A stretch of DNA of 23,756 nucleotides from Ginkgo biloba (GCA_024626585.2 JANKJI020000002.1:108208565-108232320), one strand, 5' to 3'; numbered from the stretch's first letter, positions 1 through 23,405 are shown. Notes: generated by a model from the sequence alone, not told the origin. Made by a program: numbers and translations.

Positions 1-956
1 TAATTTGATCACCTAAAATCAAATCAAACAATTATAATCGTAGTTATAGGACCAAATTCAATTCCATTTGGATTTTCCTAATATGAGAATTATGGATTCA
101 ACCTAGGAGCAGTACTAATAATGTAAATCTAATTATGGTTTTAGAAGAGGATTCCCTTATGCCCTATATCCTACTGCAAATTGCCACTTCAATAACATGA
201 TGCAATATCCCATGGTAAAAAACCCATTTAGTTTTGTAGGTCCCTTTGCCCCACCATTTACCAATAATAATGGAACACCTCACATGTCAACCCCAAGCAA
301 TAATTTCAAAGGTATCAACAATAATGGTCATAATTATAATGGAGGTCATTGAGAATATAATAATAGAAATAATAATTTCATTGATCACAATTGTGGCATA
401 AATAACAATAGTAACAACCATAATAATAACAATAGAGGCGGCACTAATAATTGTCAAGATGCGTTCTAATTCCCCAAACCTCCCTTCAACACCTCAAATA
501 TGAAGGATACGAAGATCTGTCTAAGCACTTGGCCCTATTTTTGAACAACATAGCACAACGAGGGATCATGGCTGAGACTATGATTAAACAAAGATTCCTC
601 TCAATTTCTCAAACATTCCTAAGATCACACTACAATGGTATGAATGCATCAAGGAGAATTCTTGGCCCATGATCAAGGAGCAATTCCTTGACCGTTTCCA
701 AACACTCTGCAATCCATCAGCAATCTATAAGGCCCTCCATGAGATCAAGCAAGCCACCGAAGAAAAGATTCAAAACTACAATGGTACACTCTAGGTGTTA
801 GTAACCAAATTGAAAGAAAGCAACACAATACTATCGATTACCTTAATGAACTTTTTCGTCGATGCATTATTACCCACTTACCACAAAAAAATCAAACTCC
901 ATCAGATGAGGTTATATGAGCAAGTTCAAAATCTAACATTTGAACACAAAAAATAA
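1..956 (+). mobile_element. Decayed Ty3/Gypsy gag remnant with Asn/Gly-rich N-terminal region
   Basis: Manual translation across a frameshift near 600 gives KYEGYEDLSKHLALF...TLQWYECIKENSWPMIKEQFLDRF...IYKALHEIKQATEEKIQNYNGTL*VLVTKL...LMNFFVDALLPTYHKKIKL. This is the W..W..F...Q...E...Y pattern of retrotransposon gag capsid domains. It has in-frame stops and is cut off by an LTR at 967. Confidence 0.75.
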
Positions 957-1307: not shown

Positions 1308-2533
1308 TTAGATTCACAGGTGATAAAACTAAATTGATTTCTATAGGCAAGATTTTCAAAGTTTAAATATTTGAGCTATGTGTTAATACTCTACTTGCAA
1401 ACATTTTACAAACACTTGATTGACGCAAGCAAACCACCTCTTTTGTCAAATTGCAGTCAGCATGGTGCAAAATCTTCCATCTGTTATCGGGCACCTGCCC
1501 ACGCCAAAACCACCCATTGCCTGAAATTGCCAAAATTTCCCTCTGCACAAAATGTAATTGATTACATCATCCACCTCCAGCAATTGTCCCCATCCATGAA
1601 CTGACCACTTTCCAAAATCTTCTGAATTCTGCCTTCNNNNNNNNNNNNNNNNNNNNNNNNNNNNNNNNNNNNNNNNNNNNNNNNNNNNNNNNNNNNNNNN
1701 NNNNNNNNNNNNNNNNNNNNNNNNNNNNNNNNNNNNACAATGGAATTCATAGTCTGACCCTCTAAAATTTAGAATTTGGTCACCTTATTTGATCATTTCA
1801 CTATATTAGGCATGTTTAATTCAAATGAAGTGTCTTCCCTACCCTAAAAATATCTATTTAAGTTAAAATTTCCTTGTTACATCATCCACTATATCATAGT
1901 CGATGTCAGTGACTACATTGTCTGCTTTGTCTTTCTTTGATCTGAGTCTCTAATTTCATCATCTTCTCTCATTTAGTGCGGAGTCCCAACACATCGGATT
2001 TTGCTTTGTTATTATTTTTTTTTGTTCAGTTTTGTCTATGTTTTTTNNNNNNNNNNNNNNNNNNNNNNNNNNNNNNNNNNNNNAAAATTGTTTTCATATT
2101 TTTTGAAACTGATATGTATTGGATAGAAATTTGTTGAAAAGTTGGCCAAAAGTTTTCCAAGTTCTCTGAACTTTGAGTTTCTAACCCAAAATCTGTGTAA
2201 TGTGCTCAAATCTTCGTCGAATAAAAAATTGAAATTTAGCTGCAAAAACGATTCCAGAGTTCGGCTGTGAATTATGTTTGCATAATGCTTCGTATTTTAG
2301 ATATTTGTTTCCCTTGAAGGGTTAGTACAATTGGTGCTGAATTGCATCTTTGGCCCTGATGTCTGACCATGTGCACAGGTTAGTTGTACATGGGGTTAAT
2401 GATCTCATCACATGAAACAGATGGTACAGAAATTTTGAGTAGCAGGTGCTTTTGTTTTCCATATAGTCAGCCAGGACGTTTTATGCTACAATACATAATT
2501 TGCAAAAGTCCATCATGTTTTTTCCTTTTTCAG

Positions 2534-2653
2534 GTGGCTCCTTTCCCAGGAGCTGAAACTGGTGCCGGAGGGCGCATACGAGATACCCATGCAACAGGAA
2601 TAGGATCTCTTGTTGTTGCCTCAACTGCCGGTTACTGTGTGGGAAATCTACAG
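2534..2653 (+). CDS. PUR4: Phosphoribosylformylglycinamidine (FGAM) synthase, internal exon (40 codons)
   Basis: Polypyrimidine tract and acceptor tttccttttttcAG, then VAPFPGAETGAGGRIRDTHATGIGSLVVASTAGYCVGNLQ, which carries the large-PurL signature P.PGA.TG.GG.IRD..ATG.G. Phase 0 at both ends. Confidence 0.95.
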
Positions 2654-2878
2654 GCATGTTCAATGATTTTGTTTTCATGTGTGAATGGTGATGTTTCTAA
2701 TCTAGCCGCACTAGTGTTGCACAGACTCTAATCTAGCTGCACTAGTGTTGTGCAGACCCCCAATTTTTGTCTTGTAACTACCGGGCACATAAAGTGTGTC
2801 TTACCTTTCTTTCCTCCCATTTTTGATATGTTTATCATTTCTCTAATATTTGCCTTCTCACTGTAATCTTCTGTTCAG
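2654..2878 (+). other. 225-nt GC-AG intron of PUR4
   Basis: Donor CAG|GCATGT and acceptor ctgttcAG|CTT. Splicing here gives GNLQ-LEGSFAPWED, colinear without gaps with plant PUR4 (GNLxxEGSxAPWED). No GT donor in frame gives this junction. Confidence 0.88.
2696..2757. repeat. 2 x 31-bp tandem duplication inside the GC-AG intron
   Basis: tctaatctagccgcactagtgttgcacagac and tctaatctagctgcactagtgttgtgcagac, 28/31 identical. Confidence 0.9.
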
Positions 2879-2950
2879 CTTGAAGGTTCATTTGCTCCAT
2901 GGGAGGATCCTTCTTTTACATATCCATTGAATTTGGCATCTCCCCTGCAG
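2879..2950 (+). CDS. PUR4: FGAM synthase, next internal exon (24 codons)
   Basis: LEGSFAPWEDPSFTYPLNLASPLQ, bounded by AG and a CAG|GTATGG donor. It matches the conserved PurL segment PWE...YP..LASPLQ that precedes ILIDASNGASDYGNKFGEP. Confidence 0.93.
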
Positions 2951-4194
2951 GTATGGTTCTTTTGGGAGCTTATGAAATTTTGTGAGTGACTTATTTTAAT
3001 TGCCTTGGGCATTGGTGCAAGCTTCAGTTTGCTTTTATATGACTGACTTGGTTTAGTGGCTGGTTTTATCTCTGAAAGAAATAACTATTGTGTGCTAGTC
3101 TAGGCAGTCCATGCTGGGTGCATCTTGAAGGTATTGGTTTTGTGGTTGTGAATATTGCAGACTCGTATCTTCATCTGTAGTAGCATGCATCACAACACAA
3201 TTCAAGGTACCTGTTAATTGTTAGAACTGCATCAATACATAGCTTGCCATGGCAGGCATTGATGGCCTTCGCAACTCTGCATCACTTAGTATTGTATGAT
3301 ATCAAATATAATTAGTGCACCAAGCAAACTAACTACTCTAACACTTTCTAGCAAATTCTTAATCATGACATATGTAAGCATAGGGATTGATTCTGGACAT
3401 CTTTGCAAAGCTAGGGCTTATACATATGATGGTTCCCTGGTATCTTTCATGTAGAAATACCAGTATCTTACAATCCACTTCACCCCATACCATCAATTAG
3501 GTACCCTAATATACTCGAGCATAAGAGCATGAATGCAGTCATCTGACCTTTCTGATGCGATGCAATCTTGCCGCTTTTGAGAGAAGAGGCCACCTTTTTG
3601 GTGCGGAGAGTGAATTGTTTTTTTGACTGTTCTACCCTTGCCATTATGCTGCCCAACTTTGAGGTCTTGCATGCATACTGCTCACTTTTATTGGAGACTG
3701 ATGTACGCTCTCACTTAGTTACACTTTCATTGAAGACTTTTACACATTTACAAGAAAGTTAGGTGATTGCCTCACTCCTACCAAAGACTTTTGGCCCAAT
3801 CTAACCTTGGCAAAATGAAATTCTTGCTTTCGATATCCATGCTTGTGTCAATCATAAACCAAGGACCACTTGGCTTCCAAGCATGCATTTACTCATACAG
3901 GTATCAACCATGACAACCATTTAGAAAATTATAAATTTATCTTAAGCTGCCATTCCACTTGGTAGAAAGTACACATGGATAACTTAGTCCAATGATGCAT
4001 GCAATTCAGTCAACAACTAAACCTTAATGAAGTCAAAATGATATAAATTAGACAACCCTATTACTTTCCTCACAAGGGCTTGTCCAAGCATGAATTGATA
4101 TAACATCAAATAAAGTGACCACAAATTAATAAAGAGCAGTAGAGATAGCATCGGATTAAGTCTTAGTTTAGGCTTGCAAGCCTAAAGACTTGAT

Positions 4195-4850
4195 TGTAAC
4201 ACCCCCAAACAATTTCTGGTCCTTTAACTGTCCCAACAATCGATAATAGCAGCTCAAACCCTTCTTGGGCCCCTTCTTGGCAAGCCAAAACCTTTTATGG
4301 TCATTATAGTAACCTTAGAAACAACCTTGGACATGAACAACTTCAACATCAATTTCAGCAGCTCCAACAACTCCAGCATCAACTTCAGTAGCCTCAACAA
4401 CCCTAGCAACAACTTCAGTCATTTCAGCAACTCTAGCAGCAACTTCATCAAGTTCATGCCATCCTCAACAGGATAAATTAGTAAAACAACAACTTCAATA
4501 AAAAGCTGGCGCCTTTGTAGACCAAAAACAATCTGACACCTTTGTAGGCCAAACACAATAGATTGAACCCTGCAGGTTGACTGTTGCAAGTTAAACCCAA
4601 ACCTCTCTGGAGCTCATTTTCAAGAGGCTGAACCCTCTAGGAGGTGGGAAACAACAGATTGAACCCTTGGGAGGTAGCACAGTGAGAATCTTCTAGAAGG
4701 TAAGAAACAACAAGTCGGACCCTGACATGTAACATCTATGGTAGAGTGAAACCTTGATAGGGTAGTAGGGCGACATACATATCAACAACAGAAACCAGCT
4801 TTCGGGCACATCAATGGCATGTCAGTCTCATAAATGCTGAGTACAAACAA
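4195..4850. mobile_element. Probable Gypsy LTR fragment with CAA/CAG-rich tract and internal subrepeats
   Basis: Begins TGTAACACCCC, a typical Gypsy LTR terminus. Degenerate (CAA/CAG)n at ~4335-4450 and repeated GAACCCT...GGAGGT / ACAACAGATTGAACCC units at ~4555-4720. The right boundary is uncertain. Confidence 0.5.
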
Positions 4851-5299
4851 ACTGTAGTTACCATAAAATTCATTTTGCATTAGTGGGAGGCTCATTTTCG
4901 AGTACCTTTATGGGAATGGAATGTTGCACCCTTAGAAACGCTTGGGAAATGCCAAAGTTTAAAAGTTATTTCTTTTTCTTTATGAAGCTCACCTAATATT
5001 AACCTTGGAACCTATGTTTAGTTATTTTAATCAATTTCTCTTTTTTTCGTGATTGCAGTCTTCTCTATTTGTAATTCTTCTCCATTCTTCTTCGTCAAGG
5101 TGGTTTCTTCTCTGTTTTCTTTGTTGAGGTGGATTTCTGTCAAGAATTTCACCTTCTTTCGGAATCCAGTCTTTTTTTCTCCTTCATCCTCTAAGTTGGC
5201 TTTTCTAACTTTCTACCTTTTTTTTTGGAGGGATACTTCTTTATGGATTCATGTATTGATGTTCTTGTCATTCCAGACAGCTAATTTCTTCCCTTTGCT

Positions 5300-5870
5300 T
5301 AGGAGTCTATTTGTCCATTTTGCATTTTTTTGCAGTTCTCATACTGTTTGTTACAATTCTTTTGTTTTTCCTGTGCATCCAGCTCCGTCTAGTCTGCCTC
5401 AGCATTTATGTGAATAGTTTTGTGCAAAGTTTCTTTGTATGTTACTTAATCCCCTTGCTTAATTTCTGCTTATTCCTTGAAGATGCTAGTTCTCATATTT
5501 CCGCTTTATTTTTTATCTTAAAGAAAATGTTGCATTATTGTACAGGAAAGTTTCCTAACACTCCCTTTACTTTCATATCATAATCTTTAATGGACTTATC
5601 TCTCTTCTACTATAGTTTTTTCAGGTCATGAAAAGTTGATGAGATGGTTCAGGGTTGGCATATGACTCATTGTACCCTTTCTATACTTCTGCCCAAATGT
5701 TACATGTATTTAGACTGTTAGCCTTACAGTAATAGTCCTGTGCTAGACATCTAACATAGCTACAAACTCTACACTTTTGGTATTGTCATATTTGACATTT
5801 TTGGCTTTCCAATTGAGTCACATGTACATGTGTCTTTGACCATCCCTTGATCTATCAATTAGCAGAAATT
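5300..5870 (-). mobile_element. Decayed Ty3/Gypsy gag remnant
   Basis: Minus-strand translation with frameshifts: DGQRHMYM*LNWKAKNVKYDNTKSVEFVAML / AQDYY...IWAEV*KGYNESYANP / TFHDLKKL**KRDKSIKDYDMKVKGVL, the gag capsid motif pattern. Boundaries approximate. Confidence 0.65.
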
Positions 5871-6523
5871 GCAAGGTTGTATCTCTAGCCGTGTCCTTGC
5901 TGCAACCATTGCAGAATTTGCAAATGTGGTGGAATAGTTGATGATGAAGGATGCACTGCCATCCTCTGTGTTTTCTTTGGCTGCACAATAATTAGTGGCA
6001 ATCTTTTGCCTCTACAATCTTTTTGTTGCCTTGAACATTCTGCCCTCTCATCTNNNNNNNNNNNNNNNNNNNNNNNNNNNNNNNNNNNNNNNNTGACTTT
6101 TCCACCTTCCTTGACATGTAACTAAAGCCTTAGGACTCAACTTCTTGAGGCTTTCTAACCTGATAATTTATTGTGATTTGTGGGACACTCCTCGTTTAGT
6201 GTCCACAGGTTATTGAATACCATGGTACAACATTATACCCGCCTTATTTGATGTTTTTTATGCGTCCTTGAAATCGCTTGTTAGAACGCTTTTCATGCCG
6301 AATCTTCTATCTGTAGTGACAATTCATTTACTGAGTACTTGATGTTACATATGCCTCCTATCAGAACTTCTTTAAGCATACCTTTTGATGCTATTTACCT
6401 TGATGCCTATTGAGCTTGGTCTGAGCATGATATGGAGATCACACTTGATAAATTGGAAATAAAAAATCAGCAAGGATGTAGTTTGGAAAAACTATCATAA
6501 GTTCCAAACTAGTTAGCAGATTT

Positions 6524-7256
6524 TGTTGATGGAAACGAAACAGAGTAATGTACAACTTTCATCTTGGACTCATTCTCCAATTTGTACTAGATCAGTAGCA
6601 ATTCATCATTGAATATAGGGTAACTGTTCACATTCAACATAAAGGACAATTTCGACCAAGTCTTGGTATTTTGGACATATCTTTCCACCCAAATCTCTGC
6701 TTTTCAAAAACTTTATATCGTCGGAAAGCTTAAAAGATTATCTACAACTTTTCTGAAGATATCAGGATCTAATTTTTAACGTATTAGCACCAAAAATGTG
6801 ATGAACAGTCAGGGAAGACATAAAATTAGTGACTAGACAGTGGTTACAGATTTTATTCATGCTTTGGCTTCTTGGCTTTTCAATTCTCAAACCTGTAAAT
6901 AAGTGCATACGAATTTCATACATCCTTTATATACTTTGTTTTGATGTATAGAGGGCTTCCTTGGCCTCTTATATAGATTGTTCTCCAAAGGCATGTTTGG
7001 TTCTCACATAGCAACAAAACTTTGAACCATTAGAAGAAGAAGCTCTCTCTTTGCTATATTATGCTTGATTAAGCTTCAATTTCATCTATGTACAAAGATT
7101 GAATATAGCGAAGGATTCTTTATGCACATATTGTTATGTTAATTATCTTCTATGACCTTGCATGCATTTTTTTATTTACAAAATAATTAAATATTTTTTT
7201 CTTAATTTTTGTATACCTATAAATAGATTTATTAATCTATTTGTCCCCCTCCAACA
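6524..7256 (+). mobile_element. Possible solo LTR remnant
   Basis: TGTTG...CAACA termini. Contains GAAAGC...CTACAACTTT motifs commonly seen in plant LTRs and ends TGTCCCCCTCCAACA. No TSD found and the start is uncertain. Confidence 0.35.
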
Positions 7257-7478
7257 TAAGAGATCACAGTGGTTAGATCAATTTACTTTAATAGCAAAAT
7301 CAACTTTGTTACTCTGGCATTCTTTATAAGTTTGTTGATCATATATATATATAATGGTTACAAGGTCATTATGTACAANNNNNNNNNNNNNNNNNNNNNN
7401 NNNNNNNNNNNNNNNNNNNNNNNNNNNNNNNNNNNNNNNNNNNNNNNNNNNNNNNNNNNNNNNNNNNNNNNNNNNNNN

Positions 7479-8521
7479 CATAAATTAACATAAATAGTAT
7501 GAGCTTGAAATTTATATTCTATTAGGATAACTTTTCATAAATTGTTGAAAACCCTAAGTAGGGAAAATGACTTATACCTGGTAGGGCGACTATCGAAGGG
7601 ATCTAGGTGTTGCATTATGGGTATTTATTGATTTTATGGTGTTAGATAAGTTGGTTTAATATAGGAAACTATTGATTTGTCAATCATGCAAGTAATTTTT
7701 GTAGTTGATAGTAGAAACTCTAGAGGCCAATCTAGGAAAATATAGAAATAGGCAAGTAACCTGTTGAGGGTTAGTGTGTCCTAATTTGGATGTCTCTATT
7801 TGACTATTCTTTATCCCTATGCATGCATCCCTTATGGACTAACTAGTAGTGGGTTGAGATATGCCTAATTAGGGGTTGAGTTGGTGATCATAGTTTACCC
7901 TCATTATGATCGACTTTATGGATTGTCGTTGTGGACATAGAGTTTGTTGACCATGTCGGTGCATTGTGGTACTAGGGATATTGGTGTAGCCTCAAGGTTT
8001 GGTGACCATATTTGAAATCAATATAGATAAATAATTGCTAGTAGGGATGGACATCCTTGTTGCTAGGAAAATACTAGTGCCAAAGAGGTGTTGAAATAGA
8101 CCTATGCATTGCACCCTTTATAACATTGGTATTAAGGAATGGAGTCCAACAAATCAATCATAATCGCTAGGTATTGATGGTAAATGTGTTTCGCTATCTC
8201 AATTTTGGCTACCAACATAGTAATCCCTTTTAAGTGGCTTCCATAGCCAACTACAGGGCATTAAGGTTACTGCTACAAGTTGACCTAAGTTATACCAATT
8301 TTGTTTCTAAAACCTACCATTAATCTATATGGTGCATTTTGCTGCCATAAATTAGCATAAATAAATACTTACAATGTATGAGCACTAGTAGTCGTGCATT
8401 TTCATAGTTGAAACTAATATCTGATTATTGTATGCCAGTCACCTTGCCTATATCTCAATAGTGATGTATTTGTAGGTCTAAGATATCTTTTGATGCAACT
8501 TTAGAAGGTAGGATTGTTATA
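7479..8521 (+). repeat. 5' LTR of element 1 (start lost in gap)
   Basis: 8345-8521 matches 10987-11166. 7598-7730 is homologous to the reverse complement of ~21900-22035 (LTR of element 3). Ends TGTTATA just before the PBS. Confidence 0.8.
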
Positions 8522-8522
8522 G

Positions 8523-8534
8523 TGGTATTGGAGC
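8523..8534 (+). promoter_or_regulatory. PBS (tRNA-iMet) of element 1
   Basis: TGGTATTGGAGC, 1 nt after the LTR end. Confidence 0.75.
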
Positions 8535-8537
8535 TCG

Positions 8538-10700
8538 ATGAGAGTAGAAAGATTCCAAGAACGAAATCTAAAATTTTGAAGAAATTGGAGGAAAGGAAGA
8601 AAGGAAGAAGCTGAGATTAAACAACGGAAGGAAGAAAGGAAGAAATTAGAGAACCTAGTCTTGACTTATGAATGAAGAAGGAAATGAGGTGAACAAGAAT
8701 CGGTAAGAGAATCTTTAGCAGAATCAGGAGAAGAGGTAGGGCCATTTAATTTTGAAGAGCATGAGGAGGTACAAGAGTCGTCTGACAATTTAGAGGATCA
8801 AGAACTAAAGCACAAGAAGAGATAAGCGGGAATAGAAATTGCTTCAAACCACGAAGCAATTCAAGAATGTGCAGATTATAATGGTCAGGCATTGGGATTG
8901 TCATTTTGGTCGTGGGTGAGAGTTGTGGAAACCTTCTTTTTATCCTTGGACATTTTGGAGGCGAATAAAGTTATAGTGGTTTCTTATGCTTTGATAGGAC
9001 CTGCTAGGGAGTGGTGGAATGCTACACATATTGAGATCAAGGATGGCATGATGTAGTTGATTATTATATGGTGGGAGATGAAGGAAGCAATGCTCAAGAA
9101 GTATGAACTATAGATGATACGTAGGAGGCTTATAGTCAAGTGTTTGTGATGAAGCAAACATGTATGGTGCAAGAGTATAAAAATAAATTGGATGCCCTCT
9201 TTGCATGATTGTCAGATTTAGGTTTGATGTATATGATATATCATTTCCTTCAAGGATTGAAGCCTCACATTTGGCAGAGTATTGAGGTCACAAGACCCTA
9301 AACCATAGAGGAAGCAGTTAGCGATGCTTTACAGCTGGAGGTTGCCCAGTTTAATTATGCATCACCATTCAAGAAGCCATTCTAGCTAAAGAAGGAATCC
9401 CCATCCTTTAAAAATCCCTTTGTTAAGATTGGTAAGAAGCCCTTTTTCTAGAAAAAGTTNNNNNNNNNNNNNNNNNNNNNNNNNNNNNNNNNNNNNNNNN
9501 NNNNNNNNNNNNNNNNNNGAGAGAAGTTGTCTCAACCCAAAGGAGAGAAGAAGCCGCCAATTAAGTGTGGAGGAGACCACTACAAGTGATCATGTCCCTG
9601 CCTCTGACAGAATAATAATGTCAAGCATGACAAGAAAGCAGTTATAGTGGTGTGCAAAGAGAAGATGCTCCCTCAAAGTGTATGTTTGAGACCATTTGAG
9701 AGATTTAATGATGTTGAATTATTTGTGGTTAAGGATAAGATCAATGGGTATGAAGCCACTATTTTGGTTGATAATGGTTGTACTCAAAATTTTGCATTTG
9801 AGGATTTTGCATATAGGGAAAAATTGAGAACTTAGGAAGTCCCTTATTCCCATGAAGTAGAGGAATCTTGTGGGAAGGAGACTCAGTCATGGGAGGCATT
9901 TACCGTGTAGGTTCACATCGTCTTTTGTGAGTATGAAGATCACTTATATTTTGACATTATGAAGACTGGTCGTTATGACACAATCTTACATTTCTGCAAG
10001 GGTAACAAGTTGAAGCTATAAAGTGATAGTGATTCAAGACAAATCCCATTGGTTTCAATAGTTTAATTAGTTGGGCTATTTGTAAAGGAAGTACCACAAG
10101 AAGAGAAAACCAAGGGAATTCTAGTAGAGATGGCATTGTTGTCGTTTGAATATGAGGATGTTTTTCTTGATGTGCTTCTAAGGTTCTTGCCCATTGAGAA
10201 GTAGGTGGACCACTAGATTGAGCTAGAAGACAGTTCTAGACCCTCTTACAAATTACCTTATAGATTGAGCCATGCATAGAAAGAAGAGGTTGATAAACAA
10301 ATTCATGAGTTATTGGATCAAGCTTTCATGATACCTTCCAAATCTCCTTATGGTGCACCAGTTTTACTTGCAAAGGAGGAGGATGGATCAATGTGCATAT
10401 GTGTAGATTACTAAGCATTGAAAAATTACCATTAAAGACAAGTACCCTCTTCTAATAATTGGTGAGATTTTGGATAACATGAAGAGAGCCACAATTTTCT
10501 CCAAGATACATCTAAGGAATGGTTATCATCATATTTGTATACACCCTAAGGATGTGGAGAAGATAGCTTTTACCACAAGGGGTGGCTATTATAAATACTT
10601 TGTTATGCCCATTGGGTTGACTAATTCTCTAGTTACATCTATGAGGTTGATGAATAATATCCTCAACCCTTATTTTGAGAAATTTGTAGCAGTTTTCTTG
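8538..10700 (+). pseudogene. gag-pol pseudogene: gag, Zn knuckle remnant, aspartic protease, N-terminal RT
   Basis: Gag SFWSWVRVVETFF...AREWWN; knuckle CGGDHYK*SCP (9566-9598); protease ILVDNGCTQNF; RT KSPYGAPVLLAKEEDGSMCICVDY and FSKIHLRNGYHHI...AFTTRGGYYKYFVMPIGLTN...FVAVFL. Many stops and frameshifts; ends just before the catalytic DD. Confidence 0.9.
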
Positions 10701-10880
10701 TGAACTTAGGATCACGGACGATAACAAGGAATTTCGAGAATACACAAGAATCAACACACTACACTAGATGTCTGGGTAGAATTGGTCTACTGTAGGTTTT
10801 CTTATTGCAGTACTCTGAATTGATTGTATAATGGGTACAGGGTCTATTAAATAGACGGCCCAACAATAACTTACTAATAA
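10699..10880. mobile_element. Nested insertion, probably the end of another LTR, interrupting RT
   Basis: RT homology stops abruptly at TGTGAACTTAGG. The following non-coding sequence has LTR-like character and runs into a 100-N gap. Confidence 0.5.
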
Positions 10881-10980
10881 NNNNNNNNNNNNNNNNNNNN
10901 NNNNNNNNNNNNNNNNNNNNNNNNNNNNNNNNNNNNNNNNNNNNNNNNNNNNNNNNNNNNNNNNNNNNNNNNNNNNNNNN

Positions 10981-11166
10981 ATGGTACCATAAATTAACAT
11001 AAATAGATACCTCCAATGTATGAACACTTTTATTACTGCATTTTCATAACTGAAACTAATCTCTGATTTTTATATGCAAGTCACCTTGCCTATATCTACA
11101 TAATGATGTATTCTTTGTAGCTCTAAGATATCTTTTGATGCAGGTTTAGAAGGTGAGACTGTGACA
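10981..11166 (+). repeat. 3' LTR tail of element 1
   Basis: Direct repeat of 8345-8521. Ends GACTGTGACA and is not followed by a PBS. Confidence 0.85.
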
Positions 11167-12708
11167 AATATACAAGAGATTAGAAGCTTCAACAAAGTTG
11201 GCAAGCTTCTCTAGAGAAATTTACTTCCTTGAACATCAAAAGCATTGAAAAGGCTATTGTAGTTCAAAAGGACTAGTAACAAACAGACCTGTTTTAAATC
11301 ATTGGAAAAATAAACAAATGGAAGCTCCTATGATGACAACTTCAGAATCTTTACTAGTGCAAATAAAATAGGATCAATATCCATACAAGAAGGGAAAGTA
11401 ACAACATATAGAAGTAGAAAGACTAAATGAAGTGGGCTAAACATACGTAAAATTACTAACCACAATACGTGGGTATGAGATATCATCGTAGAAACAATGA
11501 TAAAACCCCTTCTGAGCTTTCAAAAGGAAAAATGGACGTCTAGACAATATGAATGAGCCATCTAATTTTTAGATCAAATCCTCAGAGCAAACAAGTATTT
11601 AAAGAAGCAATGAAAAATTCACAACTCTTACTAGAAAATCCCTGCTCATTGAGGGCAATGATCTTCAAAGGGTGACCTAAGGTCAGCCAGATAAAGGCTA
11701 AGGTTGGTCTGAAACCAACCTAGAAAGAATGGGAGNNNNNNNNNNNNNNNNNNNNNNNNNNNNNNNNNNNNNNNNNNNNNNCTAAATTAACCAAAAGTGC
11801 AACCCTAATTGTCTATTTTTATGTCGGCCAAGGACTATGTCTAAAATTGATATTTATTGACCATAAAAGGACACCTTAACATGAGTTGGAGGATTATCAT
11901 TATTATTATTGTGCCTCGGAGCAGAACTTGTTAAGGAGTCTGAACCTGTTGAAGAAGTCAACTTGCAGCCATAAGTTAACAACCGAAATCACACCCTACC
12001 CGCAATAGTTTCCAGATTTATTGTAGGTTGAAGGTACGTTGGACTCTACAATTGCATGTTCAGGAGCAGTAGACTATAAGACAGTCGAAGGGGGCATTGA
12101 TTGAAGGATTATGACCTCATTATGATAGTCAGATTGCATTACTTACANNNNNNNNNNNNNNNNNNNNNNNNNNNNNNNNNNNTAGATCTGAAAGAAATCA
12201 TTACTTGTAGGTACATTGATGATTAGTATGACCTAGTACAGGGTTGTAAGATTTCAGTACTGTAATGATGACAAGCACTTTTAGTCAGAAATGTTGCCAG
12301 ATTGAAGTTATGACCAAGATTTCGGAAAAATGAATGTAAGTACTGTATATATAAAGAATGCATAAATGGTCATCATGAGGCAGTACAACCTCTAGCTTAC
12401 ATGTCATGCAGTATGATTTGGACAATGAATACAACCTATTCTGATTGCACATCAGATTGGTTGGATTTCTCTAACCCTTAACAACTTCTTGTTTGTACAT
12501 GCTTTTTAAGTGTAATGAATGTTATGCATGCTACCTTGATGTTTGTACTGTAGAAGTATAAAGTAATGAATGCTAGTAGACATGAATTAATGTATGTTGC
12601 TGGAAGAATGCATGAGTGATGGGTACTTGTTTTTAATGACCTTGATAATGTAAGCTGAAATGGCACCTAGATGATAGGCAAAACTCTAACATTAGTCTCT
12701 TGTTTTTA

Positions 12709-13143
12709 TGTTACACTCAAGGGAAGTCTACAGGGTAAAGTAGCTATCTATACCAACCTCCTCAGCTGGGTAAGGTCTTAACCGTCATCGACATCCTTGG
12801 TTGGGTAAGGTAGCTCTGTTTGCATGTAAGGCCTGTAGGAAGCATTGCCACCACGTAAGGCCTAGGTAAGTAGTGGAAGATAGCTTGGCATGGAAGGACT
12901 CTACAAGCATTACAAGGCCTATGCAGGATGTGGACCACCAAGGCTTATATGTAAGTGTATGGAAGCGCCTTATAGATGAAGGGGCAGTGGAATTCTCGAC
13001 TACAGTCAAGGGACAATCTAGCATATAAGTCCTATATAATGGGAGATGGTGATAGTCTAAATAAATCAAGAGTTCTAATGTTTACTGACCTTTATGTGAG
13101 CTACTTGTATGTACTACAAGTGTTGAAGAAAGGAGCTCTAACA
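12709..13143 (+). repeat. 5' LTR (435 bp) of Gypsy element 2
   Basis: TGTTA...TAACA inverted termini, immediately followed by a PBS. Its 3' part (12970-13143) is homologous to 15767-15960. Confidence 0.8.
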
Positions 13144-13144
13144 A

Positions 13145-13155
13145 TGGTATCAGAG
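13145..13155 (+). promoter_or_regulatory. PBS (tRNA-iMet) of element 2
   Basis: TGGTATCAGAG, 1 nt after the LTR-terminal CA. Confidence 0.85.
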
Positions 13156-13179
13156 TGGAAGAGATTAAAATTTAGATGC

Positions 13180-13880
13180 TTCATGATGGCATCAAGAGAA
13201 GAAGGCTGGTAATAGGCAATTAAAGGAAAGAGTAGATCAGTTTGACCAGATGCTAAAAGATAATGCTGAAGGGAAACAATTTGTAAGAAATTTCACTAGA
13301 AGAACACAAGGAGAACAGGGGACAACCCTAGAGTTCGTGAAGGGCAGCATCCAAAACAAGAACAAAGTAATAAAGCTCAAATGAAGGAATGGAAGAATGT
13401 GACTGTAGCATTGAAATAGGTAGCAGTAGAAAAGTCAATCAAGAAGTGAAAAAAGAAAAAAATGATTGGAAAAGGTTGACAAATACCACACAACGAAGGT
13501 CATTCAGACCACAAATGTGGAGTTTAAATCTTGGATCCAAGCTTTAGAAGATTACTTTGAGGCATTTGAGATAGCCCCCCAAAATAAACTTTTAATGGAT
13601 GGGTTAGCATTAAATGGGGAAGCGCCAATGCAGTGTAGTAGTAGAGAACCTTCCCCGCTTGAGAACAATTAAAAACCTTAATGACAACTAGATATGCCCC
13701 TAAAAATAACATAATGGATGCTCTTACTCAACTAACGCACTACAAATAGTACGAGACAATGATAGATTATAGCCAAAGAATGTAGGCTTATTTTGCTAAA
13801 GTGTTAGAAATGTCACTAGAACATCAAGTGCAAGGATTAAGAGTCACACTTAGGAGTCTGGTTAACCTAGCAATCCCTTC
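13180..13880 (+). pseudogene. gag remnant of element 2
   Basis: VEFKSWIQALEDYFEAFEIAPQNKLLMDGLALNGEA, related to the gag of elements 1 and 3. Contains stops and frameshifts; end approximate. Confidence 0.7.
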
Positions 13881-14638
13881 CAAGGCCACATGATCTTATA
13901 ATTTCCTTCTCTACATCAGTAAGCTATAGATACATGCTGCAAATTTCATCGATGTCTCTCTCTCTCTCTATTTGAGATTCTCACAAGCACCTATAAGAAG
14001 ATATTTTATGCTAATTATCCTTTGGGAAATAAATCATTAATCATTTTTTTATTTCTTCATTTTACAACTGGTCTCTATCATACCATGGAAATGCACAAAT
14101 TACAATAGATACCATGGAATCACACACTTTTTGAGTGCACATTTCCAAGACACCTTAAGCATTCACATGTTTTCATGGTATGCCCTAGGGCATCAAAAAA
14201 TAAATAAATAAATAATTTTGCATGCATTAGGGTCATGGGCACCATAAGAAGGTTTCATGAAGACATTATCAAATTCAAATAGTTTAATTTGATGATTTAA
14301 TCATTTTCATCTCGTTGCCCCCCAAACCCTTCAAAAATTATTTTTCATAAATAATTTAGCAGAAAGACGAGAAAACCTATCGGATACTCGAGGGTAGGGT
14401 CCTCCTCATCCACTTATAAGTGATATATCTCATTTTGTTGAATTTGGTAGCTCTGGGTCAAAGTTCTCTCCACTTTTCCAAATTTACAAATGGTAAAATG
14501 AAATGAACAGGTCACTTTTTGGATTTTTATATACATTTNNNNNNNNNNNNNNNNNNNNNNNNNNNNNNNNNNNNNNNNNNNNNNNNNNNNNNNNNNNNNN
14601 NNNNNNNNNNNNNNNNNNNNNNNNNNNNNNNNNNNNNN

Positions 14639-14828
14639 AGTACAATTAGATAGCCAAGTGACATGTGGCAAACATTAAATTATCCAACACCCCTTGTAAT
14701 GTGAGCCTCATTGGCTTTCTGACTGTAAGCTCAGTTATAAATTTCTGTAACTTTTTTCGACCAAGTGGCTTGGTAAAGATGTCAACCAACTGCTCCTCTG
14801 TGGGATTATGAACTAAGTTCACAACACC
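14639..14828 (-). mobile_element. Ty1/Copia 3' end: RNase H C-terminus, PPT and start of 3' LTR
   Basis: VVNLVHNPTEEQLVDIFTKPLGRKKLQKF (Copia QLADIFTKPL motif), then AAGGGG followed by TGTTGGATAA, with the LTR starting at 14689 on the minus strand. Confidence 0.85.
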
Positions 14829-15595
14829 ATGCTGATTTGGGCAGGGGGAAGGAGGGGAATTCAAGGGCAGGATGTTAAAATCGTAGTAGATAATGGTTGT
14901 ATTCATAATTTTGTGTTTGTTGAGTTTGTAAAGAAAATCCACTTGAAAACTACTCAAATTGATCATGAATATGAGTGGAAATGGGTGATGGTGGGGGTAT
15001 ACAAAATTGGGATCAAATGGCAAGGCAAGTGCTTATCACCATTCGAGTGTATAATAACAAACTCAATTCTACCTAGTGGACATAGGAAGATATGATGCCA
15101 TACTAGGACAAATATGGCTATGGTATTATGATGTGTATATTTTATCTAGAGGTCATGTTTTGCATTTCTTCCATGAAGATAAGCAAACTATATTGCAAGG
15201 AGACCATGATTTAAACAAATGTCCCTTGTCTCCTATGTTCAACAAAAGAGACCAACAAGAACAAAGGCAAGGTGTTACATCATTTTTAGATTATAAGTAG
15301 ATAAATCTGAGAGGAAGAATCACTTGAGCTAATACAATCTTTATTGGAACAATATAAAGATGTGTTTCTAGAAGAATAACCTAGCCATGTATAGGGCTGT
15401 AGATCATCGCATTGAATCGGACCTATATCCAAATCTACATATAGATCAGCCTATAGATTAAGTCACAATAGAAGGGAAGAAGTTCAAAGTCAAATTGAAG
15501 AATTGTTATCTAAAGGATAATACACTGTTTGGAGCTCTCATTTTACTAGTTTAAAAAAAGGATGGGTCGATGAGAATTGTTGTGGACCACATTTC
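14829..15595 (+). pseudogene. Gypsy protease and start of RT (element 2)
   Basis: KIVVDNGCIHNF; DIGRYDAILGQIWL; DHRIE...PYRLSHNRREEVQSQIEELLSKG; KKDGSMRIVVDH. Truncated afterwards. Confidence 0.85.
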
Positions 15596-15766
15596 ATTGT
15601 TAACTTTGAAATGACATACACAAAAAACTAGATTTTAGATTTCAAGAGAATAAATTTCAAAGTTCAACTAAGAATGAAAAGTTTTGCATGTGAAACATTT
15701 TGCTAAGAATGAAACCACGAGAAATAGTAAAACAAATTCCGTGATACTGTTTTGCCACTACTATGC

Positions 15767-15960
15767 TATAGATGGTAAGGGAGTGGAATTCTTGATTGTG
15801 GTTGAGGGCCATAAAATGTGTAAGTCCCACAATGGGAGACAGTTTTATTCCTGTACCCTAGTCTAATAAATCAAGAGTGCTCTAATGTTTTCTGACCATT
15901 GTGTGAGTTTGGTGTACGTAGGTTCCAACAAGTGTGGGGAAGCTGTAGCACCCTACAACA
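15767..15960 (+). repeat. LTR 3' portion related to the element-2 LTR
   Basis: Shared blocks ATAGATG..GG.AGTGGAATTCT, TAAGTCC...AATGGGAGA, TAGTCTAA(A)TAAATCAAGAG, CTAATGTTT.CTGACC and ACAAGTGT. Ends CAACA. Quite diverged and no TSD, so it may be a separate family member. Confidence 0.7.
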
Positions 15961-16063
15961 TGCCACTATTCCTAAAACAAGCAGACACAAGTGTAAGATC
16001 CTAAAACCTAAACCATCCATGATCCATGGTTTGTATGTGTATGAGCTAATCTTTTGATTTGGT

Positions 16064-16293
16064 TTGTTGAAGCATTTATGTTGTATATGGTACACGTGTC
16101 ATTTTTTTACAAGAGGCTAGCTACAAATGTTCTAGAAAACCAAGCATTGCTTGGTGATTTGTTGATTCACATAGAGCATTGTTGAAGCATTGGTGTTGTA
16201 CATGGTACAACTGTCATTGTTTTACAAGAGGCTAGCTACAAATGTTCTAGACAACCAAGCATTGCTTGGCAATTTGTTGGTTAACATAGAGGA
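16064..16293. repeat. 2 x 115-bp tandem duplication
   Basis: Units start TTGTTGAAGCATT at 16064 and 16179 and share the core TTTTACAAGAGGCTAGCTACAAATGTTCTAGA.AACCAAGCATTGCTTGG. Confidence 0.92.
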
Positions 16294-17614
16294 TTGGAAG
16301 AACTATCCTCGTGAGGGTCATTTTGAAGTAGTCAATCCCTGTGATTCCCATTTCTAAGTAGTCATCTAATAGGAATAGCTCAATGAATTTCTTACTTGAT
16401 GCTCACATTGCATCTATGTCTAGTTTAACTAAGCTCTAACAAAACAAATTAAACTTCAAACAAAATACTTGCAGTTTTCAGGACTTCCCTTTAAAAAATA
16501 TGCTCAAGCTTCTTGTTGATTCTATTTGATTTCCTTTTGGGAATGGCCATCAAGATTGTAATAAAAGAAATCCCAAGGTACATAGATTTTCTATACTATG
16601 ATTGTTGGGCCAATTTTATCCTCAGTGAAATGATGAGATGAATCAGTGTAGGTGCTGGTCTAGTTCAGACCATTCTAACCCTCCTCTTTGTACAGGAGTG
16701 ATGCAGCTGGGGCTCTGGTTTCCAAGCTGCTATATCATTGTGTAGGAATCAGAAGGGGAGGAAAAAGAAGTCATATGTGACATGAGATACTTGTACAAAT
16801 CTCAGTGATCTACATAGGCTCATGCTAGCACAAAGATGGGTAGTGCCATGCTGTATGTCTAATTTGTTGAAGTGCACACTTGCCTTGAATAGGTAGCCCT
16901 GCAAAATATTGTTTTTTTGGTCAGTCCAGAAATTGGCTAGATTTCGTTATCCTATATCCATTCCGCATTGTTACCGAGAGATCTTACTAAATCAAATGGA
17001 GATGTTGGAAGATGGACTTAATTTTATGATGTTAACCAGTATGCTACACCACAACCGTGAGATACAATATAATTTCCTCAGTAGTTGTTGTATAGAAGAT
17101 TGAATCTCAGCTGTTATGGAGGCAGTTAATGGAGTGTGTAAAGTTCTTGTCTTTCTGTTGTATGATGGTTAGTAATGTATGTTTCTTGAGTTTGTGGCAT
17201 TTATGATTCAACAGGCATTGTTTTTTGAGTTCCAGTCAGGAGATAGCATGACATCCTAGTTGCAGGAATTCTGGCCTTGCATCGGGAAAGTTCAGGATTG
17301 GTAGGATGTTTCCCCCACTTTCTATCTGCCCAAACTATGGAAGAGAATGCATTCAACCAGCAAGTAGATGCTGCTCATTCTTGATGTTTGAGCCAACTCA
17401 AAGTAAGAGGGTTTGGAATGAAACAATAGCAATTTAATAAAGTCGCCAAAACTCCTAGTATGAAGACTATTTATGGTTATGGTTGGCAAAATGCAGTATT
17501 TTAATTCTTGAAACNNNNNNNNNNNNNNNNNNNNNNNNNNNNNNNNNNNNNNNNNNNNNNNNNNNNNNNNNNNNNNNNNNNNNNNNNNNNNNNNNNNNNN
17601 NNNNNNNNNNNNNN

Positions 17615-18497
17615 CCAATGAAAAATCTTGCTTCTCCATGGATGTATATCAGATTTGGCAGTCTTTCAGGGATATGCTTCAGAATGCAATGGGATTCTCC
17701 TGGCCTTGATCATCCTCTTGCATTAGCGTGGCAATGTAGGCCTCCTCTGAGGCATAGGAATAAATTATGAAATCCTTATTGAACATAGGCCCTTTTAAGA
17801 TGAGAGAAGCTACAATACACTCCTTGATTCCCTTAAATGCATCCTTTTCCTCTTAGCTCCATTTGAAGTCTACAACCTTTCTTAACATATTGTTGATTGG
17901 GAGAGTGATGCAAGCAAAATCTAGAATGAAACACCTCAGAAAATTGATCTTTCCAAAGAAGGATTGGACTCCTTTTTTGCTAGTAGGTAATAGGAGCTCC
18001 CTAATGGATCTAACCCTATCAGGGTTGATGGATATCCCTTCCTTGGAAATGGTGTGCCCTAATATCTTTCCCTTTGTCACTCTAAGGACTGATTTCTTTG
18101 GGTTTAGAGAGATACCCCACTTTCTACACTTTTGAAAGACTTATTGAAGGTGCATAAAATACTCTTGGTAATCTTTAGAGAAGATAATGAGGTTGTATAA
18201 ATATACAACCATAGTCTTCCTTATGATTTCTCTGAGTGCAAAGTCCATTACCCTTTAAAAGGTGGCACTCACATTGATCAAACCAAAGGGCATCCTCTTG
18301 TAGGCAAAGGTGCCCCAAATAGTGGTGAAGGTGGTTTTATGTTAATCTCCTTCAATAACTAGGATTTTGTTATAGTTTAAGAAACCATCCAATAGTGACA
18401 TCAATTCTGATCCAATTATTGCTTGTAGGAGTTTCTCCATCATGGACAGGGGATAATTATCCTTCATTGGCTCCCTATTAAGTTTTTGATAATTAAA
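17615..18497 (-). pseudogene. Ty3/Gypsy (non-chromovirus, Tat/Athila-type) reverse transcriptase-RNase H remnant
   Basis: KDNYPLSMMEKLL...SLLDGFLNYNKI...KTTFTTIWGTFAYKRMPFGLINVSATF*RVMD...VVYLYNLIIFS (YLDD decayed)...GKILGHTISKEGISINPDRV...VQSFFGKINFLRCFI...FKWS...YTSMEKQ. Multiple stops. Confidence 0.92.
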
Positions 18498-18643
18498 ACT
18501 AAACCTTGGTTTTGCAGCAGTTGTTTTAGGATGCTTAAAATTAGGTTTTCTTGTTTTTACCAATTACTTCTCGGCAAGACCCTCATTTTCTGGATGAATG
18601 TTTATGTTAATGGAGTTTCCCCTTTTTGGTTTTCACTGTTCAG

Positions 18644-18747
18644 AGGTCTCAAAGACAGAGGGCAGAGTTGCACAGACGACAAATGTAGTAATAGGAGGTA
18701 CAATAACTGGGGAATCAGCAGATGAATGGAAGGTTTTAGATCAAAAG
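18644..18747 (+). CDS. Internal exon of a plant DUF493/YbeD-like protein (At1g27385-like)
   Basis: Acceptor ttttcactgttcAG and donor AAG|GTATGT. Phase 1 in, phase 0 out; encodes (E)VSKTEGRVAQTTNVVIGGTITGESADEWKVLDQK with no stops. Recognised from the conserved plant motif KAISEVSKTEGRV..TTN..IGGT....S..EW..LDQKVN.YP. Absent from the supplied ORF track in this frame. Confidence 0.85.
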
Positions 18748-21052
18748 GTATGTTTTGATGTTGTGATATAAATCTATAAACAAGAATTGAGACTGTTGAT
18801 GGACATCTGAACTGTTCTAGCTTATTGGATGTAACACTTTTTTCTTATTTCTTTTCTGTGAAAATAGTTTACAAAGTCCTCTTTCTTATGTTGTTTTCTG
18901 CTCTTGTTCTGTCTGTGGGAAGAACTCAGTGATGCAACAATGCCTCATTCTCATTCATAAAGCATTGATATGATTGCTGCATTACTGCTATATAAAATAT
19001 ACTGAACAGGAATGGAGTTGACACACCAAAGGGCTGTGAACCGCATGGTGCTTCTTCATGATTGATGCTCCATGATTTTATTGTTTGACATGACAAAGCA
19101 GGAGGTTATAGAACTAACCAATTAAATGTGAAACATGAACTACCAGACGGTCAGCTCACTCACTGTATGTAGAACACCCAAACTTGCCATCAACCATTCT
19201 TACTAATGATTATAATGAACTTGAAGGCTAAATTTCTATGCTAAGGCATTAGTATTATATCTATTGTGAGTCATGATTGTTATCAATATGTGGCATGCGT
19301 AGTGGTATTATATCTCTGTTGCTATTGAAACCTGCTATTTCATTTTTTGGATTCTTTTTGTTTTTTTTGGAAACGCCCAAAATCTTGGCTTCTATTAACA
19401 ATCTGATGCATGAATGCATTAGAATAAAAATGGAGATCTTGTCCCCTCTAAAATAGTACTGATAGAAGGACTTATAGACATGTAAACATTTTTATCCTTT
19501 CTTCAAGCTATAGTGCCCCAAAACCAGTTTCTCTGAATTCTTACAAAACATTTTTCTACCTAAATCAACGANNNNNNNNNNNNNNNNNNNNNNNNNNNNN
19601 NNNNNNNNNNNNNNNNNNNNNNNNNNNNNNNNNNNNNNNNNNNNNNNNNNNNNNNCCATTAGTTCACTAAGAAGCATTTAACAGGTTGCACTGCCAAAAC
19701 CTGTTGCTTTTACAATAAATCCCCAGAGGGAAAGCCACTGCATAATTGTAAAAACAGTTTTAGAAAGCTACAGCTGGAAAGATTGCACAAAAACTGAGGA
19801 GTGAATCTATTTAGAACTTGCGTTTTCCAGGTCTTTTGAGTGTTGTTCCATCTGTCAGGTATTTGTAGTTTCAGATTGAGGATTTGGCTCTACTTGGAGC
19901 TGAGGAGGTGTGATTGCGGCTGGAGCTGCTGGTTCCAGCTGTGTCCAGGGACTTGTCACTGCCCTTGTGTTACAGAAGAGGCTACGTTGCACATGCCTTT
20001 TGCATTGCTAAAGATGGAAGAAATCATGGTCCAAGCATTCATCCCTCCCCCATCATTTGTATTTGTAATTTTGTACTGATAGTGGCCTGACTGTTGAGGA
20101 GTGCTTGTTTTAGAACCCAATATGTAGCTGTCTTCAAAGATGGGTACATGCCCTTGATAGGCATAATGGCTAAGAGATTATGCATAATCTCCAAAATGAA
20201 GTTGCAAATATTTTGGATGTACTCTCAGGCTGCTTTCAAAGCTTATTAGTATTCTGAGATAAGATCTTTGAACAGATGTGAAACCTCTTATATTTAAGAG
20301 ACGTGTTTTCTGCTTGCATTTTGTATGCCTCTTTAGGGGTGAAACTTTGACTTTTCAGGAAATTGGCAACTATGATTACAGTCATCGAGCAGAACTCAAC
20401 CTCAAAATTATAAATCAACAGACTTTAATGGAGCTTTCTTCTTTTAATATTCTGGAGATCGTGAAGAATTTCCAAGTTAGACTGCCCTATACTGTTTCCT
20501 ATCTTAGATTCTTGGAATTGAACTGCATGATTGTGAATTTCTAATTCTGCATGTGGAGCGGGATTCTTTAGGCCAAGTCTTTTCTTAGTCTGTCGAACAA
20601 TTACCTTTGCAGTACGTGTTAAAGAGAAGGGATAGTGCATTTTATCACCTGTTAGGCCACTGTTTTTTATTTGCACTGAAAACTATCAATCTGCATTCTT
20701 AAGCATCACTTTGATGCCCCTCATCACTACATTTGCATCCAAGGTCTTGATGTTAGCATCAGTAATAATTTGTTTGGCGGTTTCCTGCTTTCTGCCGACA
20801 TATTATAAGCAAGTTCTGCCTGAAAGGCATTCTGCATGGCTTTCTTATCTTCTGAAGAGGTGTCATTAGATATCTGGCAAGAAAACCCTGTCTAATTTTC
20901 CCTCCAGCCACTGGCACATGAACTGCCTGTTGTTCTGGTCCTTTGATGCCGTGACAGATGAAAATGAAGCAAATGAAGAGAGTCCTGGGAGCCTATTGAT
21001 TGGCACTGCATGAGGTGGCCCAACTGGGAGCCTGCTATTAGCCCCTTTGTCT

Positions 21053-22259: not shown

Positions 22260-23393
22260 AAAATGCTTTTCTCTCAAAGCATTGATACGATGAGTGTTGT
22301 GCCCAATGAGATTCTTTTATTCAAGATGTGTTTAATAATTGGCACATGTTTGAAAAGTTCTATTTCCTTTTGCATTAAGTTGATNNNNNNNNNNNNNNNN
22401 NNNNNNNNNNNNNNNNNNNNNNNNNNNNNNNNNNNNNNNNNNNNNNNNNNNNNNNNNNNNNNNNNNNNNNNNNNNNNNNNNNNNTTTCTTCTAGAAAAAG
22501 TGCTTTTTACCTTGCTCAAAGAATGGCTTCTTAAAGGATGAAGACTCTTTCTTTGGTTGGAGTGGCTTCTTGGATAACTTTGCTTGTTTATATTGGGCAG
22601 TCTCTACTTGCAAAGAACCATTTCCTACCTCCTCTTTGTTTGTGGTCTTGCTACCACAATTCCCTACTAATATGTGGCTTCAATCCACGAATGAAGTGGA
22701 ACAATCTATANNNNNNNNNNNNNNNNNNNNNNNNNNNNNNNNNNNNNNNNNNNNNNNNTGGCAAACTCATGCATAGTACCCATTTGCCTCAAAACAAGCA
22801 CCTGACTGAATGCCTAACATGTCATCCTGTAGTGTATATTTCTTATGCATCACTTCATTCATCTCCAACTGTATGCTAATTCATCGCCTCATGCCTTCCT
22901 CTATTTCTATTTGAACACCATTCCCCCATTCTTTGGCATGTTTTTTGAGAGCAAATGTGACCATAGTAACGTTATTTTCTTCTAGAATATTAACATAAGT
23001 TAAGAATGTCTCCACTACTCTTACCCATGATCGAAATGATGATCCCATTGTTCTGCGATCAAAATCTAGAATTTGCATATTCTTTAGTTGCTTTGTGGTT
23101 TGACTCAACTTCCATTCTCACAAGGCTTTTTGGTTCATGCTTCTGAGTACTGTCAGATTGCTCGTACAGTTCCTCATGCTCTTCAAAATTAGGCAATTCT
23201 TCATATTCTAGTGGGTTTATTGAAGGATTCCTCGCCAATTCTTGTTGCTTCTGCTCCCTCCTATTTTCATAGGTCAGGATCATGTTCCTTGGCTTCGACT
23301 TGCCCTCCTTCAACTTCCAAACTTTAGCTTCAATGACTTTTAACTTCTTCAAGATATTACATTCTATCCTTGGAATCTTTTCTACTCCCGTAG

Positions 23394-23405
23394 GCTCTAA
23401 TACCA
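23394..23405 (-). promoter_or_regulatory. PBS (tRNA-iMet) of element 3
   Basis: GCTCTAATACCA is the reverse complement of TGGTATTAGAGC. Confidence 0.8.

Follow-up and report, generated by a model that had tools for sequence, protein, structure and literature searches.

Introduction

Three described systems come close to what is encountered in a stretch of 23,756 nucleotides (nt) of the Ginkgo biloba genome (GCA_024626585.2, JANKJI020000002.1:108208565-108232320), the whole of which is referred to here as the window. These are the enzyme PUR4 (FGAM synthase) with its large PurL counterparts, the small plant DUF493/YbeD-like proteins, and the genes or gene fragments that reside in the giant introns of gymnosperms, which are filled with transposable elements (TEs). 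Ginkgo introns have a mean length of 7.9 kb, and 12.45% are longer than 20 kb (PMC5118899). The literature found on the Arabidopsis DUF493 gene At1g27385 mentions it in a gene list only, and nothing was found on the Ginkgo gene models Gb_36145 to Gb_36149, which include the DUF493 gene discussed below.

The window is AT-rich and is interrupted by 13 runs of N, with contigs that average less than 2 kb. On one strand it holds two adjacent mid-gene exons of PUR4 and, 15.7 kb further on, one exon of a DUF493/YbeD-like gene. An initial annotation, drawn up from the sequence alone, had read this arrangement as a nested, interleaved or co-transcribed locus, and had suggested that a real linkage of the two genes might explain why many DUF493 proteins bear the name of the purine enzyme.

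This paper describes a computational analysis of both sets of exons, of the DNA between them, and of their relatives in other plants. The window most likely lies inside a giant-intron DUF493 gene of Ginkgo. The PUR4 pair is read, tentatively and at somewhat less than even confidence, as a partial genomic copy of PUR4 in intron 1 of that gene. The features themselves are ordinary exons of two known, unrelated genes, which have been juxtaposed by giant introns, by fragment duplication or by scaffolding.

Results

The DUF493 exon and the gene to which it belongs

The argument turns on the following features:

2534-2653, plus strand: PUR4 mid-gene exon, 40 codons, phase 0 at both ends, acceptor ttttcag/GTG
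2654-2878, plus strand: PUR4 intron, 225 nt, GC donor (GCATGT) and AG acceptor
2879-2950, plus strand: PUR4 exon, 24 codons ending in ASPLQ, donor CAG/gtatgg
18644-18747, plus strand: exon 2 of the DUF493/YbeD-like gene Gb_36147, 104 nt, starting in phase 1 and ending in phase 0

Positions 18646-18747 translate to VSKTEGRVAQ...KVLDQK, and this peptide shows 100% identity to residues 75-111 of Ginkgo biloba Gb_36147 (P0234), a DUF493/YbeD-like protein of 194 residues. Its identity to the Cryptomeria, Araucaria, Picea-cluster and Welwitschia proteins is 85-91%, it does not exceed 91% for any other gymnosperm, and across gymnosperms other than Ginkgo, a fern ally and angiosperms the identity over this segment ranges from 74 to 91%. 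A phmmer search with the exon peptide against 1.84 billion representative proteins returned 92 matches at E<=1e-3, and the full-length relatives carry Pfam DUF493 only. The initial annotation had placed the peptide in the plant DUF493 family and had described an unmutated 104-nt exon with strong splice sites; both statements are borne out, the latter by the translation and by the flanking sequence, which consists of a pyrimidine-rich acceptor (...ttcag/AG at 18643/18644) and the donor AAG/gtatgt. The acceptor region at 18641-18645 reads CAGAG, a possible tandem acceptor of which the second AG would drop 2 nt and shift the frame.

Exons of both genes were searched one by one rather than as a joined spliced model. 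In these exon-by-exon searches DUF493 exons 1 and 3-5 were absent from the window, in agreement with the earlier remark that neither the upstream exon (with PPQEAVLKAIS) nor the downstream exon was to be seen, and the Pfam PF04359 domain is not encoded there. Pfam searches with the three exon peptides taken singly gave no matches because these peptides are too short, and for the DUF493 exon also because the domain begins at residue 111, in exon 3.

The exon structure is conserved. The Prunus DUF493 gene has five exons, and when the Prunus and Ginkgo proteins were aligned by tblastn to six angiosperm loci, the equivalent of residues 76-111 was found as a separate exon 2 in Prunus, Amborella, Nymphaea, Populus and Wolffia. 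For proteins of fewer than 200 residues, this gene extends over 215 kb in Cryptomeria japonica and over 161 kb in a partial Taxus chinensis model; in angiosperms it measures 1.5-5 kb in four of the five sampled and 12.4 kb in Amborella. The Cryptomeria and Taxus genes are extreme intron expansions of a five-exon gene. Since conifer DUF493 genes reach such spans (161-215 kb) and Ginkgo introns are long, a 24-kb window with a single DUF493 exon is to be expected.

The AlphaFold2 model of Gb_36147 contains a confident beta-alpha-beta-beta-alpha-beta domain at residues 111-194, with a predicted local distance difference test (pLDDT) score >90; in the part encoded by exon 2, residues 77-93 form a low-confidence linker and residues 98-111 a helix. 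Foldseek ranked HP0495 (2JOQ) and YbeD (1RWU) first, at probability 1.00, followed by ACT, PII and phosphoglycerate-dehydrogenase (PGDH) regulatory domains, which agrees with the ACT-like fold that the initial annotation had attributed to bacterial YbeD. The full Ginkgo DUF493 protein is thus predicted, on the basis of this model, to adopt a YbeD/ACT-like fold, and such a fold would be compatible with a small-molecule sensor. In bacteria, the genomic neighbourhood of the gene speaks for a link with lipoate and not with purines (PMC4398509).

Several DUF493 sequences in the databases have unusual contexts. A Tanacetum coccineum model contains the exon-2 segment twice in tandem, and in a Rumex salicifolius model a RanBP1 domain is joined with DUF493 exons 2-3; both models stem either from exon duplication or shuffling, or from chimeric annotation. 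A 533-bp cDNA-like contig, SUSR01002118.1, from an assembly deposited as Soehngenia saccharolytica (GCA_005048345.1), encodes a DUF493 protein that is 100% identical to that of Cryptomeria japonica over the 90 residues compared, and is probably plant contamination of a bacterial assembly.

The Tanacetum and Rumex cases bear on the question whether the exon at 18644-18747 belongs to a gene at all, as it might instead be a stray exon 2, duplicated or captured beside a truncated retroelement, with the working DUF493 gene located elsewhere. An antisense, 5'-truncated remnant with reverse transcriptase (RT) and RNaseH sequences does lie about 120 nt away, and these two models provide examples of exon-2 duplication and of a chimeric model. 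However, the exon matches the annotated Ginkgo protein at 100% identity and has intact splice sites, and TE remnants in introns are the Ginkgo norm. We regard a stray exon as very unlikely.

The PUR4 exon pair

The PUR4 queries were E. coli PurL and five plant PUR4 fragments, taken from a collection of fragments of 63-201 residues, none of them from Ginkgo. Translation of 2534-2653 gives 40 residues that start with VAPFPGAETGAGGRIRD and end in GNLQ. By tblastn this exon aligned with residues 307-341 of E. coli PurL (E=1e-7) and, at 95% identity, with the plant PUR4 fragment P0276 (E=7e-21); the exon at 2879-2950 matched residues 38-65 of P0276 at 75% identity (E=9e-11). The best-matching plant PUR4 fragment was 98% identical. 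With both E. coli PurL and the plant fragments as queries, the exon pair displayed the conserved motif of the FGAM synthetase domain.

Translation and tblastn therefore agree with the initial annotation in recognizing two mid-gene PUR4 exons, of which the second ends in ASPLQ at 2950. The identity of the exons stands, and the boundary of the first has to be corrected, as this exon ends at 2653 with a GC donor (cag/GCATGT) and not with GT. A GT donor can be deduced for the homologues at this place because their fragments read on with V after GNLQ. Several of the plant fragments, being genomic read-throughs, are interrupted just ahead of VAPFPG and directly behind GNLQ and PLQ; as green-lineage genomic fragments break at these same three places, the PUR4 intron positions are old. 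The PUR4 intron itself contains a 31-nt tandem duplication (2696-2757).

With the same queries, neither the PUR4 upstream exon (ending in FPCA) nor the downstream exon (starting with ILIDASNG) was present in the window, and the remaining PUR4 domains (N-terminal, linker, AIRS, AIRS_C and glutaminase) gave no match in its 23.8 kb; they may lie outside it. About 70% of PUR4 is expected 3' of ASPLQ, and none of it was detected between 2950 and 18644 or in the 5 kb past the DUF493 exon. The earlier statement that the rest of the enzyme is missing from the following 20.8 kb thus holds for PurL and for all five plant fragments.

Because there is no further PUR4 exon in these 20.8 kb, a working PUR4 at this place would need interleaving with the DUF493 gene, and not mere nesting. 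In such a same-strand arrangement of two working genes, which would involve no functional coupling, a PUR4 intron of >20.8 kb would hold DUF493 exon 2, DUF493 intron 1 would hold the PUR4 exons, and each pre-mRNA would skip the exons of the other. The exons of either gene are intact and flanked by usable splice sites, and giant introns are normal in Ginkgo as well as in gymnosperm DUF493 genes. Moreover, the 104-nt exon shifts the PUR4 frame, so that skipping would be required, and nonsense-mediated decay would probably clear mis-spliced products. On the other hand, two multi-exon genes would be hard to interleave by rearrangement without breaking one of them, which does not apply to nesting; Cryptomeria, Taxus and five angiosperms lack the arrangement; and continuity is uncertain over the eight gaps that separate the two features. 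True interleaving is considered unlikely on this evidence.

Connections between PUR4 and DUF493 in other plants and in protein databases

A functionally coupled locus would require more than proximity: a shared first exon, alternative splicing or co-transcription, together with a conserved linkage that explains the PUR4 name on DUF493 proteins. The two features do lie on the same strand, 15.7 kb apart in the window, the PUR4 label does exist on DUF493 proteins, and the ACT-like fold would fit a small-molecule sensor. The initial annotation had advanced three routes to such coupling, namely conserved physical linkage, a shared 5' transit-peptide exon, and alternative splicing of a single locus. 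None of them withstood comparison with other plants and with the reading frames of the exons.

Microsynteny of PUR4 and DUF493, which the initial annotation had proposed to compare across land plants, was examined in seven other seed plants (five angiosperms, Cryptomeria and Taxus) and in no mosses or ferns, and no adjacency was observed. Gene calls and tblastn with PurL and the plant fragments revealed no PUR4 within 10 kb on either side of DUF493 in Prunus (two assemblies), Amborella, Nymphaea, Populus and Wolffia, and no other genes were called inside or beside DUF493 in the Cryptomeria (215 kb) and Taxus (161 kb) loci. The Arabidopsis genes At1g27385 and At1g74260 are presumably far apart on chromosome 1, which also counts against coupling.

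In contrast to PUR4, a 2OG-Fe(II) oxygenase is a conserved neighbour of DUF493. A gene for such a protein, of about 360 residues (PF13532), is located upstream of DUF493, in opposite orientation, in Prunus and in the monocot Wolffia (L003, 2029-4245; L004, 6716-8965; L008, 1-15). Two Hibiscus DUF493 proteins bear the name of this neighbouring oxygenase.

A first exon shared between DUF493 and PUR4 is excluded. Exon 1 of the Prunus gene encodes the DUF493 family's own transit peptide and N-terminus, including the PPQEAVLKAIS motif, which is nearly invariant from Psilotum to angiosperms, and the N-termini of the Ginkgo, Picea, Araucaria and Welwitschia DUF493 proteins are homologous. Exon 1 is therefore specific to the family and conserved from ferns to angiosperms. 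Stand-alone DUF493 architecture is moreover seen in a cDNA-derived protein of Picea sitchensis and in transcript-derived proteins of Araucaria, Welwitschia and Psilotum.

Alternative splicing fails on frame incompatibility. After the phase-0 end of the PUR4 exon, the 104-nt exon would be read into a stop after 14 codons; splicing of PUR4 into this exon could therefore yield only a truncated product. Among the 1.84 billion representatives no PUR4-DUF493 fusion was found, as all 92 relatives of the peptide have at most 527 residues and lack PurL domains, and the longer ones combine DUF493 with unrelated domains or with none. Taken together, these results largely refute functional coupling, to which we assign a minimal probability.

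The synthase label on DUF493 proteins

Dozens of DUF493-only plant proteins of about 200 residues are named 'Phosphoribosylformylglycinamidine synthase' in UniRef or NCBI, and the carriers include proteins of Cannabis, Parasponia, Quillaja, Melia, Thalictrum, Citrus and Wolffia. The label that the initial annotation had quoted is thus real. An origin of the name in similarity to PurS was considered and rejected: when the DUF493 profile was compared by hhalign with the PurS-like N-domain of E. coli PurL, the probability was 0.06. PurS was also absent from the DUF493 Pfam matches at E<=10 and from the top 50 fold matches, and a profile search against PDB gave no match. No literature was found that joins DUF493 with this label. 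The label behaves like a propagated submitted or database name that has no backing from linkage, fusion or detectable homology.

Intervening DNA and continuity of the scaffold

The DNA between the two features, and the retroelement remnants of the window, comprise the following:

2951-18643, no strand: TE-derived stretch between the PUR4 and DUF493 exons, 15.7 kb with eight N-gaps
6054-6093, 7379-7478, 9460-9518, 10881-10980, 11736-11781, 12148-12182, 14539-14638 and 17515-17614: the N-gaps between the features
588-791, plus strand: gag-like piece, a retroelement remnant
10422-10700, plus strand: reverse-transcriptase fragment of a degraded long terminal repeat (LTR) retroelement, Pfam RVT_1, E=6.2e-10
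14649-15032, minus strand: C-terminal remnant of a Ty1/copia polyprotein, from its translation, with the motif TEEQLVDIFTKPL and with the polyprotein C-terminus at about 14649-14800
17615-18520, minus strand: degraded Ty3/gypsy-type RT-RNaseH, with RT_RNaseH_2 at 17682-17852 (minus strand, E=3.8e-11) and the RVT_1 C-terminus at 17856-18140 (minus strand)

The stretch at 2951-18643 contains no long open reading frames, and only RT, RNaseH and gag remnants were recognized in it. A Pfam sweep of 98 open segments of the window detected only retroelement domains at significant scores, together with three weak matches at chance level; it detected no integrase, and Rfam gave no matches in the window. 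The gypsy-type remnant occupies one reading frame with few stops, antisense to the DUF493 gene. Its 5' truncation lies about 120 nt short of the acceptor of exon 2, and the remnant extends into the gap at 17515-17614. The motif TEEQLVDIFTKPL is taken to be that of a copia polyprotein. A minus-strand PUR4-like match at 14895-15014, which runs across an exon junction (tblastn E=0.008), was judged to be a chance match because its frame is that of the copia polyprotein C-terminus. Two copies of a 115-nt unit, 90% identical, lie in tandem at 16064-16293.

Continuity of 2951-18643 is putative. The initial annotation had considered the gaps at 10881 and 14539 to be bridged by colinear retroelements, which could not be confirmed: past the 10881 gap, the RT fragment at 10422-10700 gives way to a different repeat that is also present at 8345-8517. 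Overlapping ends were found at no gap. Two repeat copies, at 8208-9456 and 22486-23719, occur in inverted orientation with 66-71% identity, and an N-gap interrupts both at one and the same point of the repeat (9460 and 22484), which suggests that these gaps are assembly breakpoints at repeat boundaries.

These observations raise the question whether the features are neighbours in the genome at all. The contigs 2084-6053, with the PUR4 pair, and 17615-19571, with the DUF493 exon, could derive from different loci and have been joined by repeat-derived mate-pair links. Short reads, assembled with SOAPdenovo2 and GapCloser, underlie the Ginkgo draft (PMC5118899), and 13 N-gaps in 23.8 kb leave contigs of less than 2 kb on average. 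Both exon-bearing contigs are islands between gaps, flanked by retroelement remnants, and no recognisable element runs across any gap. The two repeat copies cut at the same position are typical of repeat-collapse breakpoints. Against a misjoin, the variable gap lengths (35-84 N) imply that paired reads provided size estimates across the gaps, and unique contigs of 2-4 kb are not as easily misplaced as repeats. Scaffolding is at least partly sound, since the gap at 22711-22758 is bridged colinearly by comparison with the other repeat copy. An assembly artefact therefore deserves serious consideration, although we hold it to be doubtful rather than probable.

Discussion

The explanation that we favour starts from Gb_36147 as a five-exon gene for a chloroplast-targeted protein of about 194 residues, with introns that would extend over tens to hundreds of kb and be full of decayed retroelements. 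The segment at 18644-18747 would be its genuine exon 2, joined to an exon 1 located far upstream and to an exon 3, starting with VNSYP, beyond the end of the window. As exon 1 is absent from the 18.6 kb upstream, the PUR4 pair lies in DUF493 intron 1, provided that the scaffold is right. The pair would then be an unrelated passenger in that intron, consisting of two exons and the short intron between them, copied together and situated outside any DUF493 transcript. The PUR4-like name of DUF493 proteins would be a propagated database name rather than a sign of gene linkage.

Two elements of this explanation are less firm than the others, namely the status of the PUR4 pair as a dead-end fragment, and not a part of a working PUR4, and the correctness of the scaffold order; both are tentative extrapolations from the sequence. 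The orphan status of the pair and its GC donor, at a place where homologues have GT, point to a fragment. Several observations pull in the other direction. The conserved residues are all intact across the 64 PUR4 codons and only one of the four splice sites is non-canonical, so that the pair could equally well be a member of a functional gene; GC-AG introns are known from working plant genes. Transposon termini flanking the PUR4 piece were not found, with no convincing terminal inverted repeats or Helitron-like ends. In addition, the order of the features itself may be wrong, because eight unbridged gaps lie between them. The fragment, the misplaced contig and true interleaving are alike in that none of them involves functional coupling, and that one of these three applies is highly probable.

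If coupling were true, it would give a first hint at the function of the uncharacterised plant DUF493 family and would explain its puzzling name; the tests described here show this hint to be false. The PUR4-like name on DUF493 proteins should accordingly be treated as a propagated misannotation. The locus can serve as a cautionary example from gymnosperms, where a protein of 200 residues can be spread over >200 kb and where unrelated, isolated exons can come to stand side by side as fragments or via scaffolding. If interleaving were true, the spliceosome would have to separate two overlapping pre-mRNAs over >100 kb, which would make the locus a test case for exon definition in giant-intron genomes; for splicing biology the locus would gain moderate interest only once interleaving had been proven.

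Compared with PUR4 and large PurL (E. coli PurL; Arabidopsis At1g74260), the exon pair shares the conserved motif around PFPGAETGAGGRIRD and the next segment of the FGAM synthetase domain, and other green-lineage genomic fragments have introns at the same places (before VAPFPG, after GNLQ and after PLQ); unlike these enzymes, the pair comprises only 64 of about 1400 codons, has one GC donor, and is accompanied by no other PurL domain in the window. Compared with plant DUF493/YbeD-like proteins (PF04359; At1g27385; YbeD, 1RWU; HP0495, 2JOQ), the exon at 18644-18747 agrees in its identity to Gb_36147, in its exon boundaries and in the fold of the protein to which it belongs, whereas it encodes the plant-specific segment ahead of the domain and not the YbeD fold itself; plant DUF493 proteins also add a transit peptide that is missing in bacterial YbeD. 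Finally, the locus resembles known genes and fragments in giant TE-filled gymnosperm introns in its TE-rich sequence and in the multi-kb spacing of short exons, and differs from them in that the guest lies on the strand of its host and consists of a two-exon piece only.

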